IMG/VR virus record: IMGVR_UViG_3300042934_000547
Location: 1-64,000 of that record
Strand: one strand, 5' to 3'
DNA length: 64,000 nt
Shown: positions 7,699-61,686 of the stretch, one piece after another
Layout of the letters: every line of letters begins with the position of its first letter
Numbering within the stretch: position 1 is the first letter of the stretch
Notes under the pieces: model-generated
What the model was told of the DNA's origin: nothing
Database searches by the model: none
What the model saw: only the letters and a program-made list of their open reading frames with translations
Position numbers and translations under genes: made by a program

Positions 7699-7718
7699 AA
7701 AGATCCTGATTAGGAACT

Positions 7719-9260: not shown

Positions 9261-9282
9261 TTATATATCCTCCATTTTATTT

Positions 9283-9645: not shown

Positions 9646-9683
9646 ATGCTTCAGCCCTCACTTCTATGTATTTTATTTAAATT

Positions 9684-9738: not shown

Positions 9739-9760
9739 ATTGTATATAGGAGGAATGAAT

Positions 9761-12202: not shown

Positions 12203-12220
12203 TTTTTCACAAACGCATCT

Positions 12221-12640: not shown

Positions 12641-12661
12641 AAAAAAAAATAAAGTATGGAA

Positions 12662-13614: not shown

Positions 13615-13626
13615 TATTACACCTCC

Positions 13627-13935: not shown

Positions 13936-13953
13936 CTCTAATCATCCTTTCTA

Positions 13954-14520
13954 TTATCTATTCCACCATTGGTCAACTTCGTTTGAATCATCTCCAGTTT
14001 CTTCCTGACATATATTTTCATTACTATTATAGATAGTCTCTATTTGTTTTAATGAACCCATATTATCATAAAGATAATTATTTCTTTTACCATTTGAATA
14101 GTTAACATGAATCAAATTATCTTTATCATCATATTCCATCATTTCTTCATAATTGTTTGAAGTTTTTATTCTGATTAGATTATTTCGTTCGTCGTAACTG
14201 TAATTTACTTCAAATCCTTCCTCATCCCTATAATGAACCAATCTACCTTCTTCATCATATGAACTCCACTGTTGATGGTTATCTGTGTCTTTATAATAAG
14301 TGATATTATTATCCTTATTATATTCATGCCATGATTGGAATCCATTGGAATTTTTAGTATGAATTAGATTACCTTTATCGTCATACTCTTTCCACATCTC
14401 GATTCCATTTAAAAACTTGACATATACTTCCTTTCCAAAATCGTCATATCTGCGTATAGGTAGTAATTCACCTGCGATATATTTTCGTTTGCTATCAAAT
14501 AATTCCAATACTCTACTCAT
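13954..14520 (-). CDS. Stand-alone YD/RHS-repeat protein
   Basis: About six 21-aa repeats of the form (E/S)YDxxG(N/R)L(I/V)HxxxxxG; GGAGG RBS. Confidence 0.75.
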   Translation of the reverse strand: MSRVLELFDSKRKYIAGELLPIRRYDDFGKEVYVKFLNGIEMWKEYDDKGNLIHTKNSNGFQSWHEYNKDNNITYYKDTDNHQQWSSYDEEGRLVHYRDEEGFEVNYSYDERNNLIRIKTSNNYEEMMEYDDKDNLIHVNYSNGKRNNYLYDNMGSLKQIETIYNSNENICQEETGDDSNEVDQWWNR

Positions 14521-14553
14521 ATTTATAACCTCCTATGCCTTATTATTCAGTTA

Positions 14554-14564
14554 TATAATATATA
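14554..14564 (-). promoter_or_regulatory. Early-type promoter core TATATATTATA
   Basis: Core motif just upstream of the YD-repeat gene, next to the stem-loop at 14581. Confidence 0.55.
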
Positions 14565-14580
14565 CTTAAAATAAAAAATA

Positions 14581-14606
14581 AAGAGTAGGAAATTATTCCT
14601 ACTCTT
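14581..14606 (-). terminator. Terminator after the RNR gene
   Basis: AAGAGTAGGAA-atta-TTCCTACTCTT with a T-rich tail on the minus strand. Confidence 0.8.
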
Positions 14607-14656
14607 ATAAATCATAATCCATTAATACTATTAATTTTCCCACAGTTACATCCTAG

Positions 14657-17011: not shown

Positions 17012-17044
17012 ATTTACCTCTCATTTTATGTATTTTTATTCATC

Positions 17045-17056
17045 TATTATATTGTT
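17045..17056 (-). promoter_or_regulatory. Late-type promoter AACA-N6-TA for nrdJ
   Basis: AACAatataaTA on the minus strand, ~35 nt upstream of the ATG. Confidence 0.55.
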
Positions 17057-17109
17057 CTACCGGAGTTAAAAACAAAAAAAAAATAAAGGAAAATATTTTC
17101 CTTTATTGA

Positions 17110-17322
17110 TTATTTAGCAAGACATGCGAAGTACTTTGCGTGAATAATAGCTAATGCCTCTTCTTTATTCTTACCTATAAATTCACTTTCAGAAAAACTT
17201 ATTTCATCTGAGAAGTAATTAAATAATGATTCCTTAATATTGTTAATAGTGATGAAGATTTCATCTGAGTCTTTCCATGTAGCTCCCTTTATTATTTCGC
17301 AATCTGTAATCTTATCATCCAT
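17110..17322 (-). CDS. Small hypothetical early protein
   Basis: 70 aa with GGGGA RBS, downstream of an early promoter. Confidence 0.65.
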   Translation of the reverse strand: MDDKITDCEIIKGATWKDSDEIFITINNIKESLFNYFSDEISFSESEFIGKNKEEALAIIHAKYFACLAK

Positions 17323-45454: not shown

Positions 45455-45730
45455 TTAAGGATGACAAATATTATTTTTGACTTTTTTCTTTTTTGGCTGC
45501 ATTTTCTTTCGTATCCACGAATTTTCATATAGTCTTTCGATAGTATAAACAATTTCTGTATTAACCTGTTTTGGAGACATTGGCATAACTACATAAAAAT
45601 CATCACCGAGAAGAAACCTAGTTAATTCATTGAGTGCTACTTGGGCATCCATAGGTGGACTACATATACCATAATCAAAATCTTGATTTTCTGTAAGAGA
45701 CAAAATTCTTTCAGCCGTTTCATCTTTCAT
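45455..45730 (-). CDS. Conserved phage hypothetical protein
   Basis: 91 aa, GAGG RBS. Confidence 0.6.
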   Translation of the reverse strand: MKDETAERILSLTENQDFDYGICSPPMDAQVALNELTRFLLGDDFYVVMPMSPKQVNTEIVYTIERLYENSWIRKKMQPKKKKVKNNICHP

Positions 45731-46986: not shown

Positions 46987-47664
46987 TTATTTCCATAAAG
47001 GGTTATCCTGAATTCTCATTGCTATGATCATATTTCTAACCATATCTTTAGTCATATCGATAGTGCCATCAGTGTTTCCTTTGATTATCCCTCTATCAAC
47101 AGCTTTCTGTATTTCGTCCTGATAGAACTTATCAAATTCGTCAATTTTCTTATATCTTTTATTTTCCTGCTCAAGTGTTGCTACTTTTTCTGCAAGTTCC
47201 TTAACTTGTTTAAGTAATTCATCCATAATAACCTCCATGTTATATATTGTTCCGACTTTTAAAGATGCGATATCATGATACACTAGTGGATTTATCCATA
47301 CATTAGATGTATTTCTAATACCATAATGAAGATGAGAGCCAAAACTGTAACCAGTATTACCCATAATTCCTATAGGCTGTCCAACTTTAACAATAGTGCC
47401 AACCTTTACCAATCTTGATGATAGGTGGCAGAAATAATGCTTGTGTTTATCAGGGGATTCTATTGCAACATAATTACCCCATTGCCAAGTGATGTTACCT
47501 CTATCTGTAATCATTTGGCTGGAGACTACTTTACCAGATACTGGAGATAACACGGTTATATCTCCAACCCCTACAAAATCTACTCCATGATGATAACTAC
47601 TGTCACCATTTTCTAAAATACGTGGACCAAATTTACTAGTTATTTTAAATTTCTTAAATAACAT
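46987..47664 (-). CDS. M23 family peptidase (lysin) with C-terminal coiled coil and putative wall-binding motif
   Basis: HHGVDF (HxxxD), YFCHL, MGNTGYSFGSHLHY (HxH), INP. Confidence 0.88.
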   Translation of the reverse strand: MLFKKFKITSKFGPRILENGDSSYHHGVDFVGVGDITVLSPVSGKVVSSQMITDRGNITWQWGNYVAIESPDKHKHYFCHLSSRLVKVGTIVKVGQPIGIMGNTGYSFGSHLHYGIRNTSNVWINPLVYHDIASLKVGTIYNMEVIMDELLKQVKELAEKVATLEQENKRYKKIDEFDKFYQDEIQKAVDRGIIKGNTDGTIDMTKDMVRNMIIAMRIQDNPLWK

Positions 47665-47701: not shown

Positions 47702-48535
47702 TTAATATTGATTTTCATATTGATGATATAATTCAGCCAACTTAATATCAACTTTTTGCCTTTCGGTCAATTTGTCGCTATTAAATCGTTCCTCAGATAT
47801 CAGTTGCCCATTTCCATCTTTGTTTTGAATAGTGAAATAAGCTTTAACATTAGTATTACACATATTCTCAACAATAATTTGGTGCTTATTAAAATAACCA
47901 GAAATAATATACTCTGTCATCAGATTTATATATTGGTCTCTTATAATATTATAATCAGCACTCACAAATCCAAATTCAATTCGTTTAAACCCCAGATTAA
48001 TTAGATTAGTTATACCTTCTTTTAAATATCCAATATTGAGTCTATTAATTGTAAAGTGGGCGATAGGATTACGCCCACTCTTAACGAAATTATTGATATT
48101 ATCAACAATATAATCATAAGACCCTTTCCCTGTTCTCATGATACGATTACTATTATGAGAAACTTTATTACCATCAATCGATATACATAGCAATATGTTA
48201 TACTTCTCAATGATGTCAATAACCCTATCTGAGTAAATAGTACCGTTAGTTGATGTGATGAATCTAAATTTATGATTTGGATAATTTGTCACAATATATT
48301 CACAAATATTTTCCAATCGATTTATAAACAGAAATGGCTCACCACCCAAAAATTCGACTGTAATTGTTCCAGCTGATGTCTTTTGCATACTGGTTTCAAA
48401 CGTCTGTATCATTTCTTCAAGTGTGATATCTAATAGATTATTCTCATCTTCTACGTTATTGTACACATAACAATATTTACATCGCATATTACACAACTTA
48501 GTTATATACAACGTTATATGACGAAGTTTATCCAT
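47702..48535 (-). CDS. Radical SAM protein without SPASM domain
   Basis: TKLCNMRCKYCY (CX3CX2C), FLGGEP, TSTNGT, ISIDG; no C-terminal Cys cluster. Confidence 0.85.
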   Translation of the reverse strand: MDKLRHITLYITKLCNMRCKYCYVYNNVEDENNLLDITLEEMIQTFETSMQKTSAGTITVEFLGGEPFLFINRLENICEYIVTNYPNHKFRFITSTNGTIYSDRVIDIIEKYNILLCISIDGNKVSHNSNRIMRTGKGSYDYIVDNINNFVKSGRNPIAHFTINRLNIGYLKEGITNLINLGFKRIEFGFVSADYNIIRDQYINLMTEYIISGYFNKHQIIVENMCNTNVKAYFTIQNKDGNGQLISEERFNSDKLTERQKVDIKLAELYHQYENQY

Positions 48536-49659
48536 TAAAACTTTCCCTTCTGTATATTAAATTTCTTTGCTATGTTTTCATAACCAAGTTCATTTATATA
48601 TCTTTCAGATGCTTTATAAAAAATTTTCAGAGCTTTACATACACCATCGATTGGTTCGCATATATCCCTTTTACCTTGTTCCATTATGGCTGCAAAACAT
48701 TGTCCATAACAAACCTTATAAAGTTCACAATTTCGGCATTTTGGAGATATATCATGGGTGAAATTTTTATAAATATTAGCTACATTATGATTCTCATCAA
48801 TAGTAGTAAAAATGCTTCCCATCTTAGTACGCTCTAACCGACTATTAAAGAATCTTTGACATGGATATATATCACCGTTTGGTGCTATAGCAAGTATAGT
48901 TGACCCAGCGGTACAAAAATGCATTCTTTTCTCTCTTCTAGTATTGTAAGGAAGTAATAATCCATTATCATTAAATGCTTCATTAGAATTAAATTTTTCT
49001 ATTAAAAATGAAACATATTCATCATAAAATTTCTCTAGTCTTGCTAGATCATCATCAGACCATTCACAATCTCTTACAATACTTAAATTAGTTCGTCGAA
49101 ATCCATCATTTATAGAATCACGAATTCCATCCATGAGATAATCAATATTATCGGGTGCAATCATAGATTTAAAAATACGAGATCTAAGTGGAACATTATT
49201 TACCTTACAGTATGTTTTTATTGCTTTTAGACAGTCATCATAACTTCCTTTACCATTACTATAAACCCTACAACGGTCATGAGTAGTACGACCTCCATCT
49301 AATGACATACTGATTCGTATATCTTTATCTCTTAAATATATTAATTTCTCTTCATCTAACAAAGTTAAATTTGAGGTGGTCGCAATGGATATATTTACAT
49401 TTGGATGTAAACTTTGTACCATATTAATTTTATCAACAATTCTACAGAATTTATCCCATTCTAAAGTTGCTTCACCACCAAATAGATTAATATAAAAATA
49501 TTCTAAATTATTTTTAACGATGATATCATTAAAAAATGTTGGAAGTTGTTCAATAACATCATCAGTTATTGTTACGCCATTTTCCTTATCTACATAACAG
49601 TATTTACATCTTAAGTTACATTTTTCAGTAACTATAATAAGTATACTTTCAATCTTCAT
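48535..49659 (-). CDS. Radical SAM/SPASM maturase
   Basis: TEKCNLRCKYCY, LFGGEA, SLDG; SPASM CTAG...GDIYPCQRF...CRNCELYKVCYGQC...VC. Confidence 0.9.
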   Translation of the reverse strand: MKIESILIIVTEKCNLRCKYCYVDKENGVTITDDVIEQLPTFFNDIIVKNNLEYFYINLFGGEATLEWDKFCRIVDKINMVQSLHPNVNISIATTSNLTLLDEEKLIYLRDKDIRISMSLDGGRTTHDRCRVYSNGKGSYDDCLKAIKTYCKVNNVPLRSRIFKSMIAPDNIDYLMDGIRDSINDGFRRTNLSIVRDCEWSDDDLARLEKFYDEYVSFLIEKFNSNEAFNDNGLLLPYNTRREKRMHFCTAGSTILAIAPNGDIYPCQRFFNSRLERTKMGSIFTTIDENHNVANIYKNFTHDISPKCRNCELYKVCYGQCFAAIMEQGKRDICEPIDGVCKALKIFYKASERYINELGYENIAKKFNIQKGKF

Positions 49660-49690
49660 TACATTCTCCTTATTTTGTTAATCAATAATG

Positions 49691-49729
49691 AACATGGTAG
49701 CCTACCATGTTTAAGGTGTTAACTACACC
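49691..49729 (-). terminator. Twin hairpins downstream of the Cys-rich substrate gene (partial terminator or mRNA stabiliser)
   Basis: GGTGT-taact-ACACC and AACATGGTAG-c-CTACCATGTT; no strong U-tract. Confidence 0.55.
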
Positions 49730-49739
49730 CAACCCAATC

Positions 49740-50141
49740 TCAGGTGCATGTGCAGCAATCGCAATCACATGCACATCGATCACAAGTACATGCACATCGA
49801 TCACAGTCACAGTCACAGTCATTACAATTACATGAACAATAGTTATTATATATCGCAGTAGCAGCAGTTTGTGCTGCCGAAAAAATAGCTGGATAAATCA
49901 GTTTACCTGCTTCAAAGTTTATTAATGTACTTAAATCAGCTTTCGGATTGACATATGCATTAGCATTTGCTGCTGTTAAATTATTCTTAATTGATAAAAA
50001 TAATGCTGACATAACTTTCTGATTAGCTACAGCTGCCGTAGTATCAGCAGCTTGACCAACTCGTGTTCTGGCATTATTAACAGCAGTAACAACAGCAGTT
50101 CCATCAGCCGCCAATATCGCTGTACCTTTAGTTAACGCCAT
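49740..50141 (-). CDS. Ala/Thr-rich protein with C-terminal Cys-rich (CxCxCxx)n tail; putative radical SAM substrate/precursor
   Basis: 133 aa; last 32 aa CSCNCND CDCDCDR CACTCDR CACDCDC CTCT (15 Cys). Confidence 0.75.
   Translation of the reverse strand: MALTKGTAILAADGTAVVTAVNNARTRVGQAADTTAAVANQKVMSALFLSIKNNLTAANANAYVNPKADLSTLINFEAGKLIYPAIFSAAQTAATAIYNNYCSCNCNDCDCDCDRCACTCDRCACDCDCCTCT
49767..49805. repeat. 18-bp direct repeat at 21-bp period encoding the Cys heptads
   Basis: ACATGCACATCGATCACA at 49767-49784 and 49788-49805. Confidence 0.85.
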
Positions 50142-50451
50142 TTACACCACTCTCTTTCATAATAAAATCGATACTTTCATACACCATATCACTAATCGTA
50201 AACTTATAAATTCCATGTGAAATATTAGTGATATTCTTTATGATATTATCTCCAATTATAATTTTAACTGCCTCTACTGGTTTTTCCCTATAATATTGAT
50301 TTAGCACTTCTCCATTGATTCCTGCTAATTCATTAATAAGTCTAACTTGAACCACATCACTACTAAGGTTCATGAAAAATCCGATACCGTATGCCTTTTC
50401 GATTATGACATCTTCATCTTGATATTCGATTTTGATTTTTATATTGTCCAT
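50128..50451 (-). CDS. Hypothetical accessory protein of the radical SAM cluster
   Basis: 107 aa, beta-rich, GGAG RBS. Confidence 0.65.
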   Translation of the reverse strand: MDNIKIKIEYQDEDVIIEKAYGIGFFMNLSSDVVQVRLINELAGINGEVLNQYYREKPVEAVKIIIGDNIIKNITNISHGIYKFTISDMVYESIDFIMKESGVNGVN

Positions 50452-50452
50452 A

Positions 50453-50890
50453 TTATTGGTCTCCTTTCAATGTGGAATTTACTAGTTTAGTATTAGAGAG
50501 AAACATTCTTTCATCAGAGTGATCCCTAAAATAATATATTGCATAACTTATACTCTTGATATCATGTATTTCATCATATACCAACCCAGCATCATCTAAT
50601 AATTTTACGGATATATTTTTATTATTTAATACTGCATTTTCAAGCATATCGAACTTATCACTAAATCCTATAGTGGTGATATTTTTAATTGCTAGGGAAT
50701 TTATTATCATTTCAGTTAAAGTCTTAGCAGTTTCTAGTGTTTCTTTTTTAAAATAAACACCTAATACTGCCGGAAATGATGGAAGTGTTGATTCTGATAA
50801 ACCTACTTCAGATATAACATCGAATACTATTACTTCAACATCATCAATCAGAATTTTGATCTTTGTCATGACAGTTACACTCTCTTTCAT
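50453..50890 (-). CDS. Hypothetical accessory protein of the radical SAM cluster (distant paralog of 50128-50451)
   Basis: 145 aa; shared KIKI.I start and VKxx...IxxIxxxxY...E.xF ending. Confidence 0.6.
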   Translation of the reverse strand: MKESVTVMTKIKILIDDVEVIVFDVISEVGLSESTLPSFPAVLGVYFKKETLETAKTLTEMIINSLAIKNITTIGFSDKFDMLENAVLNNKNISVKLLDDAGLVYDEIHDIKSISYAIYYFRDHSDERMFLSNTKLVNSTLKGDQ

Positions 50891-52142
50891 TCATCATAAG
50901 TGAGAATTTTTCAGTCAATAACACTTCTTGTAACTCTAACAAATGTTGTAATGTCACGATTTGTCCTTCTGTAAAATTCTCACTCAGTAATCTTCCCATT
51001 TCCTGTAAAATAACAATAGAGTTTTTGTCAGGTTTATTTATTTTTCCGAATAATTCCTCATAAACATAAATTGACAATTCTTTCTCAATTTCTAAGAGTT
51101 TACAATTTTTTGGAAAACCATATGCAATGTTTCCATTATGATTATAATTAATAGCCATACAACTTCTACAATTATAATTATCACAGTCCGAACAAGCTTT
51201 ATATCCAATCATATATTTTCTATACAATTCTTCATATTGCACACATTTTGATTTATCAACCCCATCAAATACTGAACCGATTTTAGTATCTGGATCGGTT
51301 AAAAATCCATGACATGGATACACATCACCATTAGGGGTAATAGTGCAATATGATACTCCGGCACCACAGGATTTATCAGCACGTTTATCTTTATATTGTA
51401 ATGATGTAAATACATCATGTTCTTGAATACCATTAGTATTGCAATCGATGATAATATCATTTGCGATTTTTGTATATTCTCGTCTAAAGATATCGTAGTC
51501 ACTATCATCCCAGTCTTCTTCATGTAATGCCATGAACCATATTTTTTTAAATCCTAATTCATCTTTGAAAAATTTGTATGTCTTATGTGCGTATGGTAAT
51601 GTGGCTTTTGTTACAACACTATGCACTGATATTTTATTTTGCGGTACATTAATTCTATTAAATAAATCCCTTATCTTCTTTATAGAATTAATTATATTAT
51701 TAGAAGAACCTTTTCCATTTAAATCAATTCTTTGTAGGTCATTAATTTCAGGGATAGAATCAAATGAGATTTGAATAGAAAAACTTTCAGGGCTATTTGT
51801 CCACCAATTAATCAAGAATTGTTCATATTCATCACTATATAGAACTCCATTAGTGATTAATCCAGATGTGTATACCAGATTATTTTCCTTTGTTTTCATC
51901 ATAGCATAATTAAATATGTGGTTCATCACCTCAACATTTATAGTCGGTTCTCCACCAAAATATGTAATATCAATACCTTTCTTTTCATTCTCTAAAGCTT
52001 CATTAATCAAAAAATCAACAGCTTTTTCGGCTATTTCTTTTGTCATAAAGATTCCTTTACCTGTTCCCTTTTCAAAACAATAAGTACAATTTAAATTACA
52101 AGCATCTGTTAACATCACTGATGCACTTGTTAATCCTGACAT
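50844..52142 (-). CDS. Radical SAM/SPASM maturase
   Basis: TDACNLNCTYCFE, YFGGEP, ITNG, ISFD; SPASM CGAG...GDVYPCHGF...CSDCDNYNCRSC...NC; helical C-terminal extension. Confidence 0.9.
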   Translation of the reverse strand: MSGLTSASVMLTDACNLNCTYCFEKGTGKGIFMTKEIAEKAVDFLINEALENEKKGIDITYFGGEPTINVEVMNHIFNYAMMKTKENNLVYTSGLITNGVLYSDEYEQFLINWWTNSPESFSIQISFDSIPEINDLQRIDLNGKGSSNNIINSIKKIRDLFNRINVPQNKISVHSVVTKATLPYAHKTYKFFKDELGFKKIWFMALHEEDWDDSDYDIFRREYTKIANDIIIDCNTNGIQEHDVFTSLQYKDKRADKSCGAGVSYCTITPNGDVYPCHGFLTDPDTKIGSVFDGVDKSKCVQYEELYRKYMIGYKACSDCDNYNCRSCMAINYNHNGNIAYGFPKNCKLLEIEKELSIYVYEELFGKINKPDKNSIVILQEMGRLLSENFTEGQIVTLQHLLELQEVLLTEKFSLMMNERECNCHDKDQNSD

Positions 52143-52182
52143 TGTTTTCCTCCTTTATTTCAAGGTCTACACCTTGTATTCT

Positions 52183-52194
52183 TATAAAAATGTT
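52183..52194 (-). promoter_or_regulatory. Late-type promoter AACA-N6-TA driving the radical SAM cluster
   Basis: AACAtttttaTA on the minus strand between the terminator at 52219 and the AAGGAGG RBS of 52142. Confidence 0.6.
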
Positions 52195-52218: not shown

Positions 52219-52239
52219 GGGTTGGTATTATACCAACCC
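52219..52239 (-). terminator. Terminator after the tail-fibre triplet
   Basis: GGGTTGGTA-tta-TACCAACCC followed by ATTCTTTTATTT on the minus strand. Confidence 0.75.
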
Positions 52240-53253
52240 CTATCTATTCATTATGAGAATCTCTATTAATTCTATTTCATCAGTAGTCTTATTTTGTAGA
52301 GATTTACCTACAATAGTACCGGGAATATTTTCTATCGATTTCATTCCTACACCTTCTATATCGGATGAAGTAATTAAATCTCCAATTTCTATCTTTCCAG
52401 TAATATATACTTTCAATCTACCAGCCAAACCAATAGGGATATAATTTTTCAAATTATCTTCATTTGATACGTCTTTATCCCCACCTAATAAGAATCCATA
52501 ATTGTCAGAAACAACACCTACTATCTTTTTAGAATTAGCTGATGATGAATAACAATATGTATTAGTGTCTGGTTCTAACTCGATAATATGATTAGGTTCG
52601 TAAGTGACATCTGGTTTATGTTTCTTAAATAACTCAGCGTAGTCATTCCATACAGCATTAGTTATTAAATCCCCTTCAATCCAGACTTTTTTCATTACAG
52701 CACCCATTGACCAACCACCAACAGCTAATGCATTACTCTTGTTTAACCCAAAATTTAATGCATATGCACCCGCTCGGTGAAATGATATAAAGGCGGCTGA
52801 TGCACTGTCTGAACGTATTTCTAGACCACCAGCTGCATATGCTGGTGAATAACTAACATCGGCACCACCAACAATTGCAGCTGTGAATAATCTACTACTA
52901 AGCGTTCCACCAGCAATGCCGTCTCTCCATAATGATTTATTTTTAAATCTGATATCAGTATTACCATTAGTTATTGATAATCCTACTGCTGGGAAATCAC
53001 TACTACCTTGTGCAACACCCCAAACGTTATTTGGGTCTGTGTAAATACCCCAAGCCTGAGTTTCTATTCCCTGAATATCAGCTGTTGGGGTTAATCCCAT
53101 GAGAATATCAGTCCAACCACCACTACTACTTTTAGATATTCTAATTCCTTCCTGATAATTATTTTCAGAAGGTTTAAGTATTAATCGTTTAAGATATGAA
53201 TTACCATTAACATTTAAGCTTCCATTTACAATAGTTGAATTTAACCTACCCAA
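52240..53253 (-). CDS. Tail fibre / receptor-binding protein A with C-terminal intramolecular chaperone (Peptidase_G2-like) domain
   Basis: MGRLNST N-terminus; SFHRAGAYALNFGL...GGWSMG fibre motif; NAVWNDYAELF autocleavage-type motif; TTG start. Confidence 0.75.
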   Translation of the reverse strand: MGRLNSTIVNGSLNVNGNSYLKRLILKPSENNYQEGIRISKSSSGGWTDILMGLTPTADIQGIETQAWGIYTDPNNVWGVAQGSSDFPAVGLSITNGNTDIRFKNKSLWRDGIAGGTLSSRLFTAAIVGGADVSYSPAYAAGGLEIRSDSASAAFISFHRAGAYALNFGLNKSNALAVGGWSMGAVMKKVWIEGDLITNAVWNDYAELFKKHKPDVTYEPNHIIELEPDTNTYCYSSSANSKKIVGVVSDNYGFLLGGDKDVSNEDNLKNYIPIGLAGRLKVYITGKIEIGDLITSSDIEGVGMKSIENIPGTIVGKSLQNKTTDEIELIEILIMNR

Positions 53254-53296
53254 TATTAAACACCTCCCGTCTCTATATTATAAATATTTATATTAT

Positions 53297-54229
53297 TTAG
53301 CAGTTCATAATCAATACATTGATCTTTTTTATATCTTCATTTAAATCAGTATCTAAGGCTTTAGCAATTATGGTTCCCTTAGGATTATCCAATTCCGATT
53401 TCATTCCTACACCTTCTATATGTGAAGATGTTATTAAATCTCCAGCCTCTATAGGTCCTATTACCCAAAGCTCAACTCTCCCTGCTAAACCAACGGGAAT
53501 ATATGTTTTTAAATTTTTCTCAGTAGATTGTTCTTCTCCACCAAGTAAGAATCCGTAACTATTTGATACAATACCTACTGCTAACTTAGAATTTGGAGTT
53601 GAAGAATATTTATACGTTTTGCTTTTTGGTTCTACTTCAATAATATGATGTGCTTCATAATTAACAGATGGATCGTGTTTCTTAAATAACTCGGCATAGT
53701 CATTCCACACAGCATTGGTTATCATATCACCAGCTAACCACGCACGTTTATTATATGATGGACCAGCAAGAATATCACCAGTTACATACAGTGGTTTATT
53801 TGTATGAAATCCAACGGTTGCATCAGTAACAAAATGACAATAACTTGTGTTTTCAGCACCAAAAGATGATGTACGACCACTTTTTAGTGATACTAGGTTG
53901 CCTTTTGATTCTACATTACTATTTCCTGTTATTTTACCAGCGACGATGTTTGCAGTACCAGTAGCACCACCAAACGTAAATTCGATTGGAATAGGTTTAC
54001 TATCCTTAGCCCTATAGCCAAAACGAATAGTACTCGCATTATTACTTCCACCAAAATTTATTTCATTATTATTTTCAATATATAATTTTACATTACCTAC
54101 AACACCCTCACCTGCCATTAATCCGTTTTTGCTATATAAAGCCCCATTCACATTTACATCACTACTTAAATGAGTCTTTCCGCTAACGTTTAAACTCCCA
54201 TTTATAACAGTTGAATTTAATCTACCCAA
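53297..54229 (-). CDS. Tail fibre / receptor-binding protein B with C-terminal chaperone domain
   Basis: Same N-terminal anchor and NAVWNDYAELF...GLAGR...GDLITSS domain; different middle region. Confidence 0.75.
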   Translation of the reverse strand: MGRLNSTVINGSLNVSGKTHLSSDVNVNGALYSKNGLMAGEGVVGNVKLYIENNNEINFGGSNNASTIRFGYRAKDSKPIPIEFTFGGATGTANIVAGKITGNSNVESKGNLVSLKSGRTSSFGAENTSYCHFVTDATVGFHTNKPLYVTGDILAGPSYNKRAWLAGDMITNAVWNDYAELFKKHDPSVNYEAHHIIEVEPKSKTYKYSSTPNSKLAVGIVSNSYGFLLGGEEQSTEKNLKTYIPVGLAGRVELWVIGPIEAGDLITSSHIEGVGMKSELDNPKGTIIAKALDTDLNEDIKKINVLIMNC

Positions 54230-54276
54230 TATTAAACACCTCTTTTCGAGCTGAAATGATAGATTTTATCTATATT

Positions 54277-55344
54277 TTATCCAGCCATAATTAAAACATT
54301 TACTTTCTTTATATCTTCATTTGGATTGGTTTCTAAGGCTTTTCCTATTATCGTTCCTTTAATCTTTAACTCTGATTTCATTCCCACACCTTCTATATCT
54401 GATGAAGTAATTAAATCTCCAGCACGTATTGGTCCGGTTACCCATACTTTAACTCTTCCAGCTAAGCCTATAGGGATAAAATTTTCTAAGTTCTCTTCAT
54501 TGGTTTTGTTTTCTTCTCCACCAAGTAAGAATCCATAGTTATCAGAAACCACTCCTACTAATAATTCCGAATTAGCTTTGGAAGAATATTTATATGTATT
54601 AGTATGAGGATCTAGCTCGATGATATAACCAGCCTCATAATCCTTATTATCATGTTTTTCAAATAACTCAGCATAGTCGTTCCATACTGCATTAGTTATC
54701 AAATCACCAGCCAACCATACACGCTTACTTGATTGAGCATATATATCGCCCTTAACAAATAATCTACCAGTATTTGAACCCAATGTCATCATTGTGACTG
54801 GATTATCAGCACCAGCATTACTACGTGATTCCCATGACCATCCATACCCTGTTGAATTTTCTACAATCTGTCTTATAGCCCATGATGATACATCACCTAA
54901 AGCTACACCAGCACCACCACCCGGGGCAGCACCAGTGATTGGTAACATAAATATTCGCCAAGTTTTTTCATAACCGGCACTATAGAATCTAATTCCGCTG
55001 GCTGCTCCTCCTGCATTAAAACTTAAACCACCAACGAGTGTAGCATTGTTTGCAATTAACCCAGCACTTCCACCTGAACCACCGAATACAAAGGAGCTAG
55101 GGATAGGTTTACTATCCTTAGCTCTATATCCAAAATAAATAGTACTTAAGGCATTACTCCCGCCAAAATTAACTTCAGAATTAAATTCAGGATATATTTT
55201 CATCAATTCATTGTATCCCGGCTGGTCAGTAGTAAATCCACTATTTCCATGCACTGTGCCTGATACATCTAAATTATTTCTTATATATGCCTTACCATTA
55301 ACAGTTAGAGTTCCATTTATAATGGTTGAGTTTAATCTACCCAT
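54277..55344 (-). CDS. Tail fibre / receptor-binding protein C with C-terminal chaperone domain
   Basis: Same termini; shares the NFGGSN...FGYRAKDSKPIP module with protein B. Confidence 0.75.
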   Translation of the reverse strand: MGRLNSTIINGTLTVNGKAYIRNNLDVSGTVHGNSGFTTDQPGYNELMKIYPEFNSEVNFGGSNALSTIYFGYRAKDSKPIPSSFVFGGSGGSAGLIANNATLVGGLSFNAGGAASGIRFYSAGYEKTWRIFMLPITGAAPGGGAGVALGDVSSWAIRQIVENSTGYGWSWESRSNAGADNPVTMMTLGSNTGRLFVKGDIYAQSSKRVWLAGDLITNAVWNDYAELFEKHDNKDYEAGYIIELDPHTNTYKYSSKANSELLVGVVSDNYGFLLGGEENKTNEENLENFIPIGLAGRVKVWVTGPIRAGDLITSSDIEGVGMKSELKIKGTIIGKALETNPNEDIKKVNVLIMAG

Positions 55345-55356: not shown

Positions 55357-58300
55357 TTAATTTTCAATAATCTGCTTACAATATACGTATCCGTCATTGG
55401 TAAATATGGATTCTTTAGGATTAAGATAAAAATCCTTTCCGTCAGGGGGTTCTACATATTCCCCTTCTATATCTGAATCAAAAATAGTAATCCAGTCAAC
55501 CCCATTCGTTGATACTTCTAACTTATTTTTGTAATAACTGCGTGTATCATGACCATAATGGTTTAGATTTATTCTGGTTATTGTAGCTATATAACCTATA
55601 TCAACCTGAATATAACAGTGCTCATTAGTTGTAGTATCAATATAACCGAGAGAACCATCTCTAACATTCATACACGGTAATGCTAACATACCGCCATATA
55701 ATATATTTGGATCAAATGGAACAGCGACTGTCCTCATGGTAGCAGCATTAGTTGTACAAACTTTCCCCGTTAATATTTCTTCTTCAGTTTCGTTATAAGC
55801 CCTTAATCCAAACCAGTGATTATTTGGTCCAGTTGTGTTACCGGCAATCCAGTTTCTTATATATCTAATAGGCATTCCACCAGCAATTACTTCAGATGCA
55901 TCTAAAATACCTTTATCAGAAACATTTCCTCCAGAATTAAATGGCATTATCATATTTTGTGGAAAGGTTATATTTTTAAATGTCATACCACCAAATCTCC
56001 ATGGTTTATATCCCGGTCCATAACCAGCAAATATTCCAACCCTTACATATTTGGTTCCTACCCAGAAATTACCTATTTTTGGATTGAATTTAAATGAGTA
56101 TTTAGTCCATTGTTGAGGTATTGAACCACTGAATGGGTAAATATATGTGCCACCATCATAATCGTTAGATACTTTCGTTCCAGCCTTAATTAATCCACGA
56201 CTCCATGGATTTAATAGTGTGATAACATTTCCTTCTACCTTAAGATAATAATCATCTATTCTAGCTACTTCATAATTCCTATATTCAGGTCTATCAAATA
56301 TACCTATTTTCTTATCGTATCGTCTGACACCCGGTTCAAGATTGTTCCAATTGACTCCAGATGTTAACTGTACTGTAGTATCACCATCTTTTAAATCAGC
56401 AGCCAAAGTAGTTCTAGTATTTCCAACATTAGACACCATAGAAACACTTATAGGTTTCATCTCTCGATCATAACAAGCAACACACATATATCCCAGAGAT
56501 AGTTCAGTAGTTGTACTACGTAACCACATATTGAATTCATAAACGCCATTATCATTATTAATCGGAATCAATGTATCATCAAAAACTTCACCATATCCCG
56601 GGAAATCTATACAACCATTACCAAATACACCATCTGTAGCAATAAAAGTCCCAGTGATTGGAGCAAAAATCCCGTGTCCAGAATTTTGAAACCCCCTTAT
56701 CGACTTATCTTCCAATCTACCATTCCAAACTAAGTTGTCGTCATCATTTTCAACTATTTCTTCACAAAATAAACTTCCTTTATCATCAATGAATGCACGT
56801 GTCTCATAAACTTCTTTAACATCTTGTGCACTAAGTGCATTAGCATATATTCTCACATCGTCAATAACTCCATTGAAATGTCTACTTGGTGATGTACCTT
56901 GCTGTTCCCCACCTATATATATTTCACCTGTATTAGTAAAATATCCAGTATTTACAACAGTGTGTTTTAATTCTCCATTTATATAGAACTTCAAATTATC
57001 CGATTCCCAAACGAGTGTTAACATACTCCATTGATTTAACGGAATTACCTGTCCAGTATAATCGTGATATCCGGGTGTAACTTTACCATATGCATGTGCT
57101 GATAAATATCCATCTTTATTAATTGTAAGATATATTCCTTTGTATCTCAAAATCATATCCCTATCACTAATTATTTGTCTCGCTATTGGGTATACCCAAG
57201 TTGTTAATGTAGCCGTTTGATACACTAATATATTTGGTTGTACTTTTACTAATCCTTGAGTATCCATAAATCTCATAGCATTACTACCAACTTTAGTATT
57301 AGATGAAATGATAGATGGAGAAAATATTGATAGAGTTTCTGATATATCCTCATGAAAATCACTACTATCAGTTATAATAGCATGTCTTATTCCATTGACA
57401 AATGGTGTAACATGGTCTTTAGCTTCCAATTGTGGAGCACAAAACCAAGTTCTTTGAGATTCACCATTTGGATTTCCAAAAAAGAATTCAAAACTTAACG
57501 ATTTAGATTGACTGTCCATTGGATTTAAAAATGGTTGCCAAATTATTCTATGCCATTCATCATCGCCCGGAACATTTATGTATTCACTATTATATCTACC
57601 AACTTCAGAATTATCAGCTGTATAGAATTTAATTCTAAAGTTAGAGTCTCTTGTTTTCACATATAACGAACAAGTGTATGTTTTTCCGGGTTCTTGTGGA
57701 GCATAATCTCCATAGCTATACCAATAACATTCTGCTGCGGAACTTCTATAGAAACTAACTACTGGAGAACTTATACCTTTAGGTGGTTCTATATCATTCC
57801 ATATTATTCCGGTGCAATAAGTTTTACTCCAACCAACATCTAAGTCAGTATTAATAATCACATTTTGTGTAGATTCTTCATATGGATTGTCAAACTTATA
57901 ATGAGCGATTTTAGTTCTATAAAGATCTCTAACTTCCTTTTGTGATAGCGTGTGATTGTATACTCTTATATCGTTCATTCTTATGGGAAGAACGGCATTT
58001 GGACCATTTCCAGCATATACGGTAGGTAAGTTAATGAAAAAATTTGATATATATCGAGTATTAGTGGTTGATGGTTTTATACTAGTTAATTTTTGTGAAT
58101 TTATTAAATTTCCATCGAGAAAGACGGATATTGTTTGATTAAGTTTATCATAGGTTACATATACATGAACCCATTTATTATAAGGAATTATTTCACTTAT
58201 AGTGATTCCATATGACGCATCTGAGCGTACTGTTGCCAGTAATGATATATCAATTTTATTTGATACCCATGTTAATGCCAATCCACCATAAGCATTATAA

Positions 58301-58587
58301 CCTAATAATGTTCCAGTAGGGGTTGTAGATATGGTATCTGTGACTATAGTTGATAAATGAGCTTTACATTCGGTTTCATCGAAATAAAGCCATCCACCGA
58401 ATGAACAGTCAGTTTTAAATAAACCCCATTCCTCATATTTAATACCAGTATCTATAGAATATGGAATTTTCATACAAGTCCCTAGCATACCATTATTAAT
58501 TTTAGTACCTCCAGTTACTGGTGTATTTTTGTTTCTTATTATATCAATTGTGTCCTGTGTAAACGGATAATGTGCTATCAATCCCAT
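55357..58587 (-). CDS. Large modular tail adhesin (LamG x2, carbohydrate-binding-like, discoidin/F5-8-like)
   Basis: LIAHYPF and DIRVYNHTLS / DDVRIYANALS LamG ends; RYIRNW...NHW...KLEVSTNGVDW discoidin-like module. Confidence 0.75.
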   Translation of the reverse strand: MGLIAHYPFTQDTIDIIRNKNTPVTGGTKINNGMLGTCMKIPYSIDTGIKYEEWGLFKTDCSFGGWLYFDETECKAHLSTIVTDTISTTPTGTLLGYNAYGGLALTWVSNKIDISLLATVRSDASYGITISEIIPYNKWVHVYVTYDKLNQTISVFLDGNLINSQKLTSIKPSTTNTRYISNFFINLPTVYAGNGPNAVLPIRMNDIRVYNHTLSQKEVRDLYRTKIAHYKFDNPYEESTQNVIINTDLDVGWSKTYCTGIIWNDIEPPKGISSPVVSFYRSSAAECYWYSYGDYAPQEPGKTYTCSLYVKTRDSNFRIKFYTADNSEVGRYNSEYINVPGDDEWHRIIWQPFLNPMDSQSKSLSFEFFFGNPNGESQRTWFCAPQLEAKDHVTPFVNGIRHAIITDSSDFHEDISETLSIFSPSIISSNTKVGSNAMRFMDTQGLVKVQPNILVYQTATLTTWVYPIARQIISDRDMILRYKGIYLTINKDGYLSAHAYGKVTPGYHDYTGQVIPLNQWSMLTLVWESDNLKFYINGELKHTVVNTGYFTNTGEIYIGGEQQGTSPSRHFNGVIDDVRIYANALSAQDVKEVYETRAFIDDKGSLFCEEIVENDDDNLVWNGRLEDKSIRGFQNSGHGIFAPITGTFIATDGVFGNGCIDFPGYGEVFDDTLIPINNDNGVYEFNMWLRSTTTELSLGYMCVACYDREMKPISVSMVSNVGNTRTTLAADLKDGDTTVQLTSGVNWNNLEPGVRRYDKKIGIFDRPEYRNYEVARIDDYYLKVEGNVITLLNPWSRGLIKAGTKVSNDYDGGTYIYPFSGSIPQQWTKYSFKFNPKIGNFWVGTKYVRVGIFAGYGPGYKPWRFGGMTFKNITFPQNMIMPFNSGGNVSDKGILDASEVIAGGMPIRYIRNWIAGNTTGPNNHWFGLRAYNETEEEILTGKVCTTNAATMRTVAVPFDPNILYGGMLALPCMNVRDGSLGYIDTTTNEHCYIQVDIGYIATITRINLNHYGHDTRSYYKNKLEVSTNGVDWITIFDSDIEGEYVEPPDGKDFYLNPKESIFTNDGYVYCKQIIEN

Positions 58588-58601
58588 ATCTTCTCACTTC
58601 C

Positions 58602-61600
58602 TTAATTTTCAACAATTTGTTTACAATATAGATATCCATCATTGGTTAATATAGCTTCCTTAGGATTGAGATAAAACTCTCTTCCACTACTAGTTTCTGC
58701 ATATTCTCCATCCGCATTTGAATCAAATATTGTAGTCCAATTAACTCCATCAGTCGACACTTCTAATTTATTTCCGTGATAAGTTCGACCGTCGGAATAA
58801 TAATGCCATAATTTTATTTTGTTTATTGATGTAATGTATCCTATATCTACAGTAAGATATGGAACTGCCTCAACATAATTATTTGTATTTAAATTTCCAT
58901 TACATAATGCTGAACGAGGTCCTCCATATATAGGATAAAATAATCCAGCAATACCAGCATGTGCCACGGGAGTTTCTATTGTTAATTTGCCCAAAATGAT
59001 ATTCTCATCAACTTCATTATATGCTTCCATTTGAACCCAATGATTTCCACCATTAGCTGTGCTACCATTAATATGATTTCGTATATATCTAACGGGCATA
59101 CCACATGTAACAACTTCAGATGTATTTAAAATACCTTTTTCAGAAAGATCGCCACCATAGTTAAATGGAATTATTTTATTTTGAGGTGACGTTAAATTCT
59201 TCACAACTATTCCGCCAAATCTCCATGGAGTATACACTGAATTTACAGGTCTTGAGCTAATACCGAATAAAACATATTTAGTACCTGCACGAAAACTATT
59301 ATAACCGGGACCATATTTAGCCGAATAATTAGTCCATACTTGTGGATAATTTGGGATATGCGGGTATGAATATGTGCTACCACTAAAACAGTTAGCAACA
59401 TAGGTTCCAGCTTTAATTAATCCTCCATTCCATGGTTGAGTTAAAATAATTGTATTTCCTTCGACTCTGAAAAAATAAGCATTTAAACGTGACACTTCGT
59501 AGTTTCTGAATTCTGAATGATCAAATATACCAATCTGCTTAGTATGGTGTTGAAGTGTTGGATCAGTGTTAACCCAGCTTGCACTAGAAGTAAGCTGTAC
59601 GATGGTATCTCCGTCTTTTAAATCAGCAGCAAGTGTTGTTCTTGTAGCTGCATAATGCATAGTTCGGTCATGTGTAAGAAACCTTTTATCTTTATCAAAA
59701 CAAATAATAGAAACATATCCAGACGCCAATTCAGCACTCATACTACGTAGCCAAATATCAAATTGATAAACATCGTTTGTATTAATAGGAATAAGATAGT
59801 TTATATAATTCGAAATAGTACCATGACCTTGAAAATCCATGCATCCGTTACCAAATACACTATCAGTTGAAATAAATTGTCCACTTGTATCGGTACTAGT
59901 GGATTCAAATCGACCAAACCCCTTATTAGATTTATCTTCGAATCGACCATTCCAAACTAAATTATCGTCGTATTCTTCAATTATCTCTTCACAAAATAAA
60001 GCTCCTTTATCATCGATAAATGCACGAGTTTCATAAAGTTCTTTAATATCTTCTACGGTAAGTTGATTAGCATATATTCTAAAATCATCAATAAACCCAT
60101 TCATATCCCAACCTGAATGATAGTTGTTGATAAACAAATAAGCCCATGCGGATAGATTTACTCCCAATAAAGTATACAAATGCCATTTACCGTCATTAAC
60201 TGGTGCATAGCCTACATTTCCATCTATAAAAATCATAATAGCACCAGCAGCACTATGATAGAAATTACCAACTCCTTCAGCAGTAGCCATTATATAATTA
60301 GAACCATTTCCATAATCTAGACCAGTTCCATTCATGAATAACCAATTAGTTAATACATCTGAATTTTTAAACCAGAAACTTATGGTACCATTAATAAGAG
60401 CAGTTTTAACTATATCTGGTATTCTAATTGATTGATGTGTTTTAGCAAATCTAAGAGCACCACTACCAATTTTAGAATCGTTAGTAATGGTAATTGGATT
60501 AAACAAAAGCGTTCCATCATTATGAAAATCACTACTATCAGATATAACAGCATTTCGTATACCATTTACATATGGAGTATAATGATCTTTCTTCTCAAGT
60601 TGCACATCTCGAACCAAAATGAATGTATTGGTATTAGGTATAGACATCAATACATAAAATCTATAATATGAATTAACTTCAGCTACGAATGTTTTACTAA
60701 ATTGCCGTTCTTTAACGTTATGAGTTTTTGAATCAAATAAATTTACATCAGCACCATCTTTATATAGACCGAGATGTAATAGAATATTATCATTACTTTG
60801 TATTTTCAGTGAAACTGTATATGTAACACCAGCTACTAATCCCGTATAATCTTGATACATTCCCGGAGTAGAAGAAGCTTGGTTAGATTTACATTTAATA
60901 TAATCTATCCCATCTATTGTTTCCTTTGATAAAGTCACATTCTGATTAGGTTTCCATGATGCTAAATTTTCGCCATTTACAAATAGATTCTCAGTAGATT
61001 CTTCATATAGATTATCAAATTTATAATGACATATCTTAGTCTTGTAAATATCTTTAGCTTCTTTCTGTGATAGAGTATGGTCATAAACTCTCACATCATT
61101 ATAAAGTCCAGTAGTAGTATAGCTATTATAATTTACACTCCATTGATTTATCTGTAATGGCTGTTCAGTAAACTTAACTTTTATGGATGGTATAAACGAA
61201 TTAGTTAACACACCATTTACATAAAAACATATTTTATTTTCTTGTAAGTTATAAGTTAATATGATATGATACCATTCATTCAGATTTATTATTGGTCCAA
61301 GAAATTCATCCCAACTCCTATTTCCATTTATATATCCAACGGATGCTGATAATCTATTACCTGCTAGATTAATTCCAATATTTGATGTATTTACATAATT
61401 ATGCATAGTTAATATAGCTGTGGGACTAGTTGAATATGCGGTTAGTTTAACCCACAAACAAAAACTTTGATCCCCATTTAAATAGAAATTTCTATTAGAT
61501 GAAGCATATGCACCAATAACTGATGCTGTATAACACTTACCTAGTTTTCCGTTACTATCAATATTAAATCCATTATATCCAATTAAATGGTTATCATTTC

Positions 61601-61652
61601 CAGTATAATCTAGTAAATTTTCCATTAGTGGGTAATGGGCTAATAAACTCAT
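58602..61652 (-). CDS. Large modular tail adhesin, paralog of 55357-58587
   Basis: Same domain order with blocks of near identity (YETRAFIDDKG.LFCEEI, TRTTLAADLKDGDT); start at ATG 61652 (GGAGGTGAGG RBS). Confidence 0.75.
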   Translation of the reverse strand: MSLLAHYPLMENLLDYTGNDNHLIGYNGFNIDSNGKLGKCYTASVIGAYASSNRNFYLNGDQSFCLWVKLTAYSTSPTAILTMHNYVNTSNIGINLAGNRLSASVGYINGNRSWDEFLGPIINLNEWYHIILTYNLQENKICFYVNGVLTNSFIPSIKVKFTEQPLQINQWSVNYNSYTTTGLYNDVRVYDHTLSQKEAKDIYKTKICHYKFDNLYEESTENLFVNGENLASWKPNQNVTLSKETIDGIDYIKCKSNQASSTPGMYQDYTGLVAGVTYTVSLKIQSNDNILLHLGLYKDGADVNLFDSKTHNVKERQFSKTFVAEVNSYYRFYVLMSIPNTNTFILVRDVQLEKKDHYTPYVNGIRNAVISDSSDFHNDGTLLFNPITITNDSKIGSGALRFAKTHQSIRIPDIVKTALINGTISFWFKNSDVLTNWLFMNGTGLDYGNGSNYIMATAEGVGNFYHSAAGAIMIFIDGNVGYAPVNDGKWHLYTLLGVNLSAWAYLFINNYHSGWDMNGFIDDFRIYANQLTVEDIKELYETRAFIDDKGALFCEEIIEEYDDNLVWNGRFEDKSNKGFGRFESTSTDTSGQFISTDSVFGNGCMDFQGHGTISNYINYLIPINTNDVYQFDIWLRSMSAELASGYVSIICFDKDKRFLTHDRTMHYAATRTTLAADLKDGDTIVQLTSSASWVNTDPTLQHHTKQIGIFDHSEFRNYEVSRLNAYFFRVEGNTIILTQPWNGGLIKAGTYVANCFSGSTYSYPHIPNYPQVWTNYSAKYGPGYNSFRAGTKYVLFGISSRPVNSVYTPWRFGGIVVKNLTSPQNKIIPFNYGGDLSEKGILNTSEVVTCGMPVRYIRNHINGSTANGGNHWVQMEAYNEVDENIILGKLTIETPVAHAGIAGLFYPIYGGPRSALCNGNLNTNNYVEAVPYLTVDIGYITSINKIKLWHYYSDGRTYHGNKLEVSTDGVNWTTIFDSNADGEYAETSSGREFYLNPKEAILTNDGYLYCKQIVEN

Positions 61653-61686
61653 ATTCCTCACCTCCATTGTAATTTAAGCAAAATAA

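Follow-up and report, generated by a model that had tools for sequence, protein, structure and literature searches.

The 64,000-nucleotide stretch analysed here (the window; positions 1 to 64,000 of the IMG/VR record UViG_3300042934_000547) harbours on its minus strand a module of six co-oriented, tightly packed open reading frames (ORFs) located at 47702-52142. Three of the ORFs encode radical S-adenosylmethionine (rSAM) enzymes, two encode small accessory proteins and one encodes a 133-aa protein with a Cys-rich tail, the putative substrate of the enzymes. Some twenty further phage contigs carry the same gene set, in most cases next to tail-fibre genes, and the module probably serves to cross-link a phage protein chemically in a way not described before. 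The complete record comprises 231,975 bp, which is the size of a jumbo phage (here an uncultivated one), and the G+C content of the window is ~30%.

The gene content had been outlined in an original prediction made from the letters of the DNA, and in this respect the prediction was confirmed: the six genes have the sizes then given, two of the rSAM enzymes are of the SPASM type while the third lacks this domain, 15 Cys residues are present in the tail of the 133-aa protein, and the module is situated between a triplet of tail-fibre genes and a gene for an M23 lysin (Table 1). As had likewise been claimed, no transporter, leader peptidase or immunity gene was found among the six genes. Successive ORFs overlap by 47, 14 and 1 nt or are separated by gaps of 1 and 80 nt, the stop codon of the gene for the 374-aa enzyme and the start codon of the gene for the 277-aa enzyme sharing the sequence ATGA. 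The Met at residue 8 of the 145-aa protein may be the true start of that protein.

Table 1. Coordinates of the module, of its flanking features and of Hint-fused substrates in other loci
Feature	Position	Strand	Basis or description
rSAM/SPASM enzyme, 432 aa (A-type)	50844..52142	-	Pfam, NCBIfam, CteB alignment
Accessory protein, 145 aa	50453..50890	-	counterparts at equivalent position in other loci
Accessory protein, 107 aa, predicted all-beta	50128..50451	-	AlphaFold model, homologue search
Putative substrate protein, 133 aa	49740..50141	-	ORF list, Cys scan, N-domain profile, AlphaFold
N-domain of the 133-aa protein, three predicted helices	49839-50141	-	AlphaFold
C-terminal heptad array of the 133-aa protein, 15 Cys	49743-49838	-	CxCxCxx x4 and a short CTCT end
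rSAM/SPASM enzyme, 374 aa (B-type)	48535..49659	-	Pfam, NCBIfam, CteB alignment
SPASM-less rSAM enzyme, 277 aa (C-type)	47702..48535	-	Pfam, NCBIfam, orthologues
Two paralogous virion proteins, ~1,000 aa, upstream of the fibre triplet	55357-61667	-	Laminin_G_3 and F5/8 type C (galactose-binding-like) domains
Three paralogous tail-fibre genes, 337/310/355 aa, upstream of the module	52240..55344	-	common N-terminus, C-terminal Peptidase_G2/IMC domain
Terminator-like hairpin	52219..52239	-	9-bp stem with 5 GC pairs; T-rich tail
Hairpin between the substrate and B-type genes (80-nt gap), possible weak attenuator	49691..49711	-	folding z = -1.48
M23 peptidase with SLH domain (lysin), downstream of the module	46987..47664	-	SLH 23.2 bits, cut-off 20.8
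Tad8 (type II Thoeris inhibitor) homologue, 91 aa, 2 kb downstream of the module	45455-45730	-	Pfam, 66 bits, E 2.7e-18
Class II (B12-dependent type) ribonucleotide reductase, ATP-cone domain	14657-17011	-	domain matches
Hint-fused substrates in other loci	L008 4390-5781; L013 414-1808; L012 3-1082; L007 307-999		

Radical SAM enzymes and accessory proteins

All three enzymes belong to the radical SAM superfamily. The Pfam profile Radical_SAM (PF04055, cut-off 29.5 bits) matched the 432-, 374- and 277-aa proteins with 46.6, 50.6 and 58.4 bits, respectively, and the motif CX3CX2C is present at residues 14-15 in each of them. The SPASM profile (PF13186, cut-off 21.5 bits), which stands for a Cys-rich C-terminal domain that binds two auxiliary 4Fe-4S clusters, gave 26.4 bits for the 374-aa enzyme and 20.3 bits, i.e. 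~1 bit under the cut-off, for the 432-aa enzyme. The latter nevertheless aligns through the SPASM region of CteB to residue 447, contains 12 Cys past residue 200 and continues beyond the SPASM region with a C-terminal extension of ~70 residues, which from a reading of the sequence appears to be helical. No SPASM match was obtained for the 277-aa protein, which has a single Cys past residue 200 and ends at the rSAM core; since orthologues of equal length exist, the enzyme is not truncated.

Among the NCBIfam models, the PapB ranthipeptide maturase (NF047865) was the best for all three enzymes, with scores of 194, 188 and 131 bits (432, 374 and 277 aa; the match of the last spans the rSAM core only). 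The cut-off of 340 bits was reached by none of them, and hence they are not members of this family. The second rank was taken in each case by a SCIFF or a CXXX-repeat maturase model. In the same order of enzymes, the SCIFF maturase model TIGR03974 scored 153, 115 and 80 bits (cut-off 425), the CXXX-repeat maturase model TIGR04115 127, 119 and 116 bits (cut-off 350), and TIGR04463, the CrpC type, 78, 78.5 and 56 bits (cut-off 525). With scores below every curated cut-off, the enzymes belong to no named maturase family. The pVip/viperin models, too, stayed below threshold (60 bits against a cut-off of 180 in NCBIfam, 42-61 bits in PADLOC), so that the question raised with the original prediction, whether the enzymes resemble peptide maturases or rather families acting on cofactors and nucleotides, was answered in favour of the maturases.

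The closest solved structure is that of CteB (PDB 5WGG), which was matched with an E-value of 2.8e-34 by the 432-aa and 2.2e-28 by the 374-aa enzyme. These alignments begin at CteB residues 102 and 97, respectively, and those with the SCIFF model at position 97-103, which indicates that the enzymes lack the N-terminal leader-binding domain known as RRE (the recognition element of RiPPs, peptides that are made by the ribosome and altered post-translationally).

Mutual identity among the three enzymes is only 23-26%, and each has orthologues of its own in diverged loci (individual loci are designated by L numbers). Orthologues of the A-type enzyme (34-65% identity) were found in L002, L008, L009 and L017, those of the B-type enzyme (34-68%) in seven other loci, and C-type orthologues (30-59%), equal in length to the 277-aa protein, in L002, L009 and L013. 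In L007 the C-type and B-type enzymes are fused into a 636-aa protein, and a 634-aa gene of L012 exhibits the same doubled Pfam pattern. The low mutual identity, taken together with the separate orthologues, points to three old and distinct functions rather than to recent copies, and the three enzymes probably work together.

The 145-aa protein gave no match in Pfam, NCBIfam, PHROGs or PADLOC. At the equivalent position, L002 and L009 each have a weakly conserved counterpart and L008 has two. For the 107-aa protein, homologues are confined to six proteins among 5.8 billion, all of them encoded in these clusters and always immediately upstream of the heptad gene described below. Its AlphaFold model is all-beta, with eight strands and a mean predicted local distance difference test score (pLDDT) of 71, and the top Foldseek matches of the model are almost all tail-tube, Hcp and Mu gp44-type folds, although these matches are weak (E 0.02-0.1, TM-score 0.45-0.55). 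A PqqD-like RRE is a winged helix built of three helices and a three-stranded sheet; thus, the possibility that the 107-aa protein is a stand-alone RRE was ruled out by its eight-stranded model. No PqqD or RRE match was found for either small protein in Pfam or NCBIfam, searches of Pfam and PHROGs with both proteins and their relatives yielded no matches, and the two proteins are not detectably related to each other.

The cysteine heptad protein and its relatives

The 133-aa protein carries 15 Cys in its last 32 residues, with 14 Cys in the best 30-residue segment. It is the only ORF of the window with such a run: the sole other ORF at the 6-Cys cut-off has 6. At the DNA level, a 21-nt tandem repeat (49758-49811) matches the heptad, the consensus of which is C-[S/T/A]-C-[N/D]-C-[N/D]-x. 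Over 120 heptads from 44 representatives, position 2 is occupied by Ser (58%), Thr (18%) or Ala (10%), 86% in total, position 4 by Asn (48%) or Asp (44%), 92% in total, and position 6 by Asn (48%) or Asp (43%), 91% in total, while Arg, Tyr, Asn and other residues are found at position 7. Each heptad thus holds the spacing C-x-x-[N/D] twice. In the tail of the 133-aa protein itself, adjacent C-D pairs and C-x-x-[N/D] spacings are accompanied by a single CX3D motif.

AlphaFold modelling together with six homologues predicted three helices over residues 10-99 (block-mean pLDDT 68-92) and a disordered tail. A Foldseek search of the PDB and BFVD with the N-domain model found no significant match, the best being an uncharacterised Myoviridae protein (E 0.03). 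At the junction of domain and tail there is a conserved aromatic residue, and neither Gly-Gly nor any other leader-cleavage motif was found there. Since the N-terminal 100 residues are predicted to form a folded domain and not a disordered leader, "protein modification" fits the 133-aa protein better than "RiPP". A profile of the N-domain matched 43 proteins among 1.84 billion cluster representatives, every match being N-terminal, and PHROGs contains no family for the 133-aa protein. By these profile matches, the protein defines an unnamed family.

In the same frame past the TGA stop of the substrate gene, the codons at 49719-49742 (minus strand) specify Asp-Trp-Val-Gly-Cys-Ser and are followed by TAA; in several relatives the C-terminus consists of Trp preceded by Gly or an acidic residue. 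The TGA stop may be recent, or it may be read through.

A DNA search with the cluster and a tblastn search with the 133-aa protein of 50,697 GenBank phage records found nothing, and tblastn with the 374-aa enzyme detected GenBank phage relatives at 23-26% identity only. Those at 24-26% are unannotated faecal contigs, and the one inspected, L016, is a bacterial SCIFF locus; record MT835472 was rejected as a phage relative, being a bacterial SCIFF locus beside SecDF. The closest homologue of the 133-aa protein, and the sole close one among 5.8 billion proteins, shares 59% identity with it (58% in a MAFFT alignment) and is encoded by L002, a phage contig of 246 kb on which all six genes recur in unchanged order, placed directly after a 782-aa IMC-type fibre gene. 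Relatives of the 374-aa enzyme comprise a handful of proteins at 34-68% identity, all from phage-like contigs, after which the identity drops to ~28-29% (clostridial SCIFF maturases). Every relative with at least 34% identity adjoins a heptad-Cys gene where the contig is long enough.

More distant loci were obtained from one profile-search look-up, a scan of IMG/VR and a metagenome scan. Using home-made hidden Markov models and heptad counts, 25 of the loci were tagged for rSAM, IMC-type fibre and N-domain genes, and L007, L012 and L014 were read by hand. Once duplicate contigs had been removed, 20 distinct loci contained a heptad gene with some flank. Genes for rSAM enzymes, usually three to six, lie near the heptad gene in 18 of the 20 loci; of the remaining two contigs, one is 4.3 kb long and the other breaks off within the heptad gene. 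The objection that homologous rSAM genes might occur mostly without a Cys-rich gene, considered in the original prediction, is thereby refuted. Of the 20 loci, 11 contain an IMC-type fibre gene. A single base separates the end of this gene from the heptad gene downstream in L024 and L039, in L017 the fibre and heptad genes are separated by a small beta protein alone, and in L008 further fibre-like genes are interleaved. This linkage lends real support to the claim that the substrate is virion-associated; the location in the particle itself is something we infer.

The tails of the substrates vary considerably. A second subfamily has a different N-domain start and 7-28 heptads, and in relatives of 520-540 aa the heptads are found in the middle of the protein. 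Arrays of up to 28 heptads, or arrays inside proteins of this size, suggest a structural element rather than a peptide. About nine representatives possess a C-terminal Hint/intein-type domain (PF14890, 40.7 bits in L013), which ends with "GDG" and a few residues and is devoid of the usual C-terminal Asn and downstream nucleophile; such a domain can therefore only cut or activate its own N-terminal junction. A Hint domain that removes itself would have a parallel in the fibres encoded next to it, with their self-cleaving chaperone domain. The substrate of L002 ends with "C-GLVIGDN", which, judged by eye, resembles the relic of a Hint domain after an internal deletion.

Homologues of the N-domain with tails devoid of the Cys heptad were observed in L022 (6698-7306) and L023 (193-756), the tails being rich in Ser/Phe/Asn or in His/Arg/Ser/Tyr. 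They resemble substrates for aromatic (cyclophane-type) cross-links. Each of these homologues is directly followed by an rSAM gene of 480-520 aa, and as proteins with non-Cys tails are likewise rSAM-adjacent, the N-domain behaves as a general handle for rSAM-modified repeat tails. In L014, L022 and L023, in-frame TAG codons occur in every gene examined; TAG probably stands for Gln, since a near relative has Gln at both TAG positions of the L014 substrate gene.

Several related loci contain additional genes. In L002 the module is directly followed, at 12458-17269, by a gene for a fourth rSAM protein (603 aa) and by those for two giant CXXX-type repeat proteins rich in Cys (551 and 421 aa); for the two repeat proteins, faint PF27846 matches are listed in a pre-computed table, whereas the Pfam scan run here gave none. 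In L021 (IMGVR_UViG_3300026484_000595, 500-12700) a 28-heptad protein lies among five rSAM genes, and from a reading of the translations the neighbours appear to include fatty-acid-synthase-like genes (two KAS-like, a hotdog dehydratase-like and an SDR-like) as well as a gp25-like baseplate gene; L021 may represent a larger phage biosynthetic island in the baseplate region. A conspicuous motif in helix 1 of the substrate seems to recur in the CXXX-repeat protein of L002 and in the 28-heptad protein of L021, but the profile comparison gave no support for homology. Two loci of the second subfamily have oxygenase-like genes: an Asp/Asn beta-hydroxylase-like gene adjoins the heptad gene of L024 (2210-3016; 21.1 bits, cut-off 22.6), and a 2-oxoglutarate-Fe(II) oxygenase (60 bits) is found in the heptad cluster of L039 (10265-11017). 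These proteins may be oxygen-dependent tailoring enzymes for the same Asp/Asn, and the beta-hydroxylase-like neighbour in L024 points to Asp/Asn side chains as targets. In L009 (6908-7264), and also in L010 and L011, a protein of the Acb2/Tad1-hairpin family is encoded directly after a five-rSAM cluster. The Acb2/Tad1 family comprises anti-CBASS/Thoeris sponges.

Flanking genes, signals and host

The C-terminal Peptidase_G2/IMC domain of the three fibre proteins upstream of the module is of the self-cleaving chaperone type, and the ~1,000-aa proteins with lectin-like (Laminin_G_3 and F5/8 type C) domains encoded further upstream are probably receptor-binding proteins. On the downstream side, a near-identical M23/SLH arrangement likewise follows the module of L007. 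The Tad8 homologue is accompanied, just downstream of the module, by a deoxyribosyltransferase-like and a macro-like gene. No tRNA genes were found within the window.

The hairpin at 52219-52239 is strongly terminator-like and closes the fibre operon, separating it from the module, which starts after a gap of 97 nt behind a good ribosome-binding site. The late-type promoter of the original prediction was not recovered: sites were no more numerous in a sigma-70 promoter scan than after shuffling of the sequence, the 97-nt gap ahead of the module had none on the correct strand, and k-mer counts of this gap revealed AT-rich words only. The hairpin at 49691-49711 was dismissed as a notable element, its stability being no greater than that of shuffled sequence.

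As to the host, the lysin targets an SLH-type cell wall, which is a host hint, and the class II ribonucleotide reductase fits oxygen-free life. The SLH lysin, the low G+C content and the clostridial nearest relatives of the enzymes together point to an SLH-bearing, probably anaerobic Firmicute as the host; the anaerobic host assumed in the original prediction is thus plausible. The heptad family was not found in 185,579 species genomes, and hence there is no prophage to reveal the host.

Proposed cross-linking of a phage protein and comparison with known systems

With a probability of about 50%, the six genes constitute a multi-enzyme thioether cross-linking module for a non-exported, probably tail-fibre-associated phage protein. 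The folded three-helix N-domain of the 133-aa protein would serve as a handle and the C-terminal heptad array as a target, on which the three anciently diverged rSAM enzymes would act by abstracting hydrogen from carbons in the side chains of nearby Asp/Asn residues and perhaps also of Ser/Thr. Bonding of these carbons to Cys sulfurs would produce small thioether rings in a dense ladder, which neither the redox state nor proteases would affect. The 145-aa and 107-aa helpers would probably take the place of an RRE in holding or presenting the substrate. The product, not exported and with its N-domain kept, would most likely become a virion component associated with the tail fibres, for instance a rigid tip, a cap or an adhesive whisker. 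Among the conceivable chemistries, thioether formation has the best backing from homology and from the N/D/S/T pattern of the heptads; for comparison, the acceptor residue is Asn in the case of NxxcB and Thr in the case of CteB. The synteny, the length of the arrays, the presence of heptads in large proteins and the lack of export and cleavage genes speak for a structural role linked to the fibres. Tentatively, the array, laddered with thioethers by three to six dedicated rSAM enzymes, might even be a new kind of virion building element, i.e. a rigid, redox-proof rod or tip on the fibres, its C-terminus being Hint-activated or released in some lineages, although this picture must be regarded as rather doubtful.

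The agreement between three Cys registers and three core enzymes is suggestive, yet other loci have up to six enzymes. Several observations weigh against the cross-linking of a fibre-associated protein. Since the scores lie below the cut-offs, the chemistry may differ, involving e.g. epimerisation, C-C links or Cys oxidation. The PapA pattern is absent from the tail, where one CX3D motif occurs, and metal-binding proteins, too, typically have CxC repeats. Shared ancestry of the loci, and not independent selection, may be part of the reason for the linkage to fibre genes. In L009 and L010 no fibre gene is present in the available sequence and the cluster lies beside the Acb2/Tad1-like gene; together with the Tad8 homologue of the window, this places the module at the border of structural and accessory genes. 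Finally, the structural hint provided by the model of the 107-aa protein is a weak one (E 0.02-0.1, pLDDT 71).

The enzymes being nearest to PapB and SCIFF ranthipeptide maturases, the 133-aa protein could alternatively be a RiPP precursor with a long leader, the cross-linked Cys core of which would be cut off, freed at lysis and act on neighbouring cells as a bacteriocin or ranthipeptide-type signal. The gene order, with a hairpin after the substrate gene, is RiPP-like, and the recurrence of the N-domain with very different repeat tails is reminiscent of shared RiPP leader families. The hairpin, however, is statistically unremarkable, a cleavage motif is missing at the junction, the prediction for the N-domain is a folded one, and no leader peptidase, transporter or immunity gene was found in the loci examined. 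A released peptide also agrees poorly with up to 28 heptads, with heptads within 500-aa proteins and with the persistent linkage to fibre genes, and is thus considered unlikely.

A tail with free thiols could instead bind metal in the manner of metallothioneins or act as a scaffold for iron-sulfur clusters, whether as a metal-filled fibre core or as an Fe-S store for the phage rSAM enzymes. CxC with Asp/Asn is a typical metal ligand pattern, as found in metallothioneins, the tail alone is predicted to be disordered, and metal ions are held on repeated His motifs in phage fibre tips and spikes. Such binding would need no enzymes, yet in 18 of 20 loci the heptad gene is found together with three to six maturase-type rSAM genes, and Cys-free homologues of the N-domain are rSAM-adjacent as well. 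Moreover, Asn and Asp at over 90% of positions 4 and 6 suit acceptor residues, and a metal-binding tail therefore seems decidedly unlikely.

The genes just downstream, i.e. those for the Tad8 homologue and the macro-like and deoxyribosyltransferase-like proteins, as well as the Acb2/Tad1-like gene directly after the cluster in L009-L011, are what might be expected if the cross-linked protein acted outside the particle as an effector of host takeover or anti-defence, inhibiting or sequestering a host factor. Beyond a generic similarity to viperin (42-61 bits, compared with 131-194 bits for PapB), no component of the module belongs to a known defence or anti-defence family, and fibre genes are linked to the module more often and more closely than anti-defence genes are, which renders an effector quite improbable. 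Lastly, it is hardly credible that the rSAM enzymes act elsewhere (on the fibres, a nucleotide or a cofactor) and that the Cys-rich gene is an unrelated neighbour: the 277-aa enzyme is indeed viperin-sized and covers most of the pVip profile (61 bits), and all scores are under family cut-offs, but the co-occurrence with the heptad gene is nearly universal, the best models are peptide maturases and the fibre proteins have no Cys-rich or repeat region.

If the cross-linked protein has a role in the virion, the module would represent something categorically new. As a thioether-laddered rod or tip, the protein would to our knowledge be the first of a phage particle to owe its architecture to enzyme-installed radical cross-links instead of folding or self-catalysed bonds. 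Were the product a fibre component, phages would harden their host-recognition apparatus by costly, oxygen-sensitive radical chemistry. This would also account for a part of the numerous rSAM genes of large phages that still lack an explanation. From a practical point of view, three compact RRE-free enzymes and a simple repeat substrate could be of use in peptide stapling, as could the new folded handle domain, which recurs with Cys and non-Cys repeat tails, and the Hint-fused variants suggest C-terminal activation.

The claim that no phage system of this kind has been characterised stands: none was found in the GenBank phages, and no such phage system was found described in the literature searched. 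The only cultured-phage relatives in the GenBank phage collection are the rSAM genes of the Campylobacter CP220 group and of Erwinia jumbo phages, which are phage-encoded and of the rSAM/SPASM type as well (23-24% identity). Unlike the genes of the module, they are single genes, and there is no heptad-Cys gene beside that of CP220.

With CXXX-repeat peptide maturases (TIGR04115/TIGR04119), a system of which we know no experimental characterisation, the module shares the second- to fourth-ranked model of its enzymes (116-127 bits) and, in L002, the additional CXXX-repeat proteins. The scores are below the cut-off of 350 bits, and the repeats differ in period and register. SCIFF maturases of Clostridia include the closest solved structure, CteB, to which the rSAM core and SPASM region could be aligned throughout, and their clostridial members are the nearest cellular relatives of the enzymes (~28-29% identity). 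In contrast to CteB and its substrate CteA, the phage enzymes are devoid of the RRE, the substrate is not a 45-residue six-Cys peptide, and the best score is 153 as opposed to 425 bits.

The best model for all three enzymes, aligned from the rSAM motif onwards, is PapB, the substrate of which, PapA (of the freyrasin system), is likewise rich in Cys/Asp repeats. PapB joins the Cys sulfur to the beta-carbon of Asp and tolerates Cys-Xn-Asp with n = 0-6 (PMC9413430). The phage enzymes, however, score 131-194 bits where 340 are required, and three to six of them are present instead of one. The phage repeat is CxCxCxx and not CX3D, the repeated Cys-X3-Asp/Glu that defines membership being absent, and the phage substrate has a 100-residue N-domain predicted to be folded, is phage-encoded and is linked to fibres.

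The thioether chemistry of rSAM enzymes has been described for small bacterial peptides and, since 2026, for one archaeal protein (PMC13692751). In the latter case, the rSAM/SPASM enzyme CrpC of Methanococcus voltae installs ranthionine links on the large Cys-repeat protein CrpA, which has the motif C-X-X-Q/D and a leader-like N-terminal region (PMC13692751). CrpA resembles the phage substrate in its C-terminal Cys repeat, and the C-x-x-[N/D] spacing is found in the phage heptads as well. Unlike the module, the CrpC system is cellular, relies on a single RRE-bearing enzyme and a 17-residue repeat, and has no link to a virus particle. The enzyme class and Cys-repeat substrates are already known. 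New are the occurrence in phages, the heptad, a handle domain that is folded, beta helpers dedicated to the module instead of an RRE, the multiple enzymes, the Hint fusions and the linkage to tail fibres.

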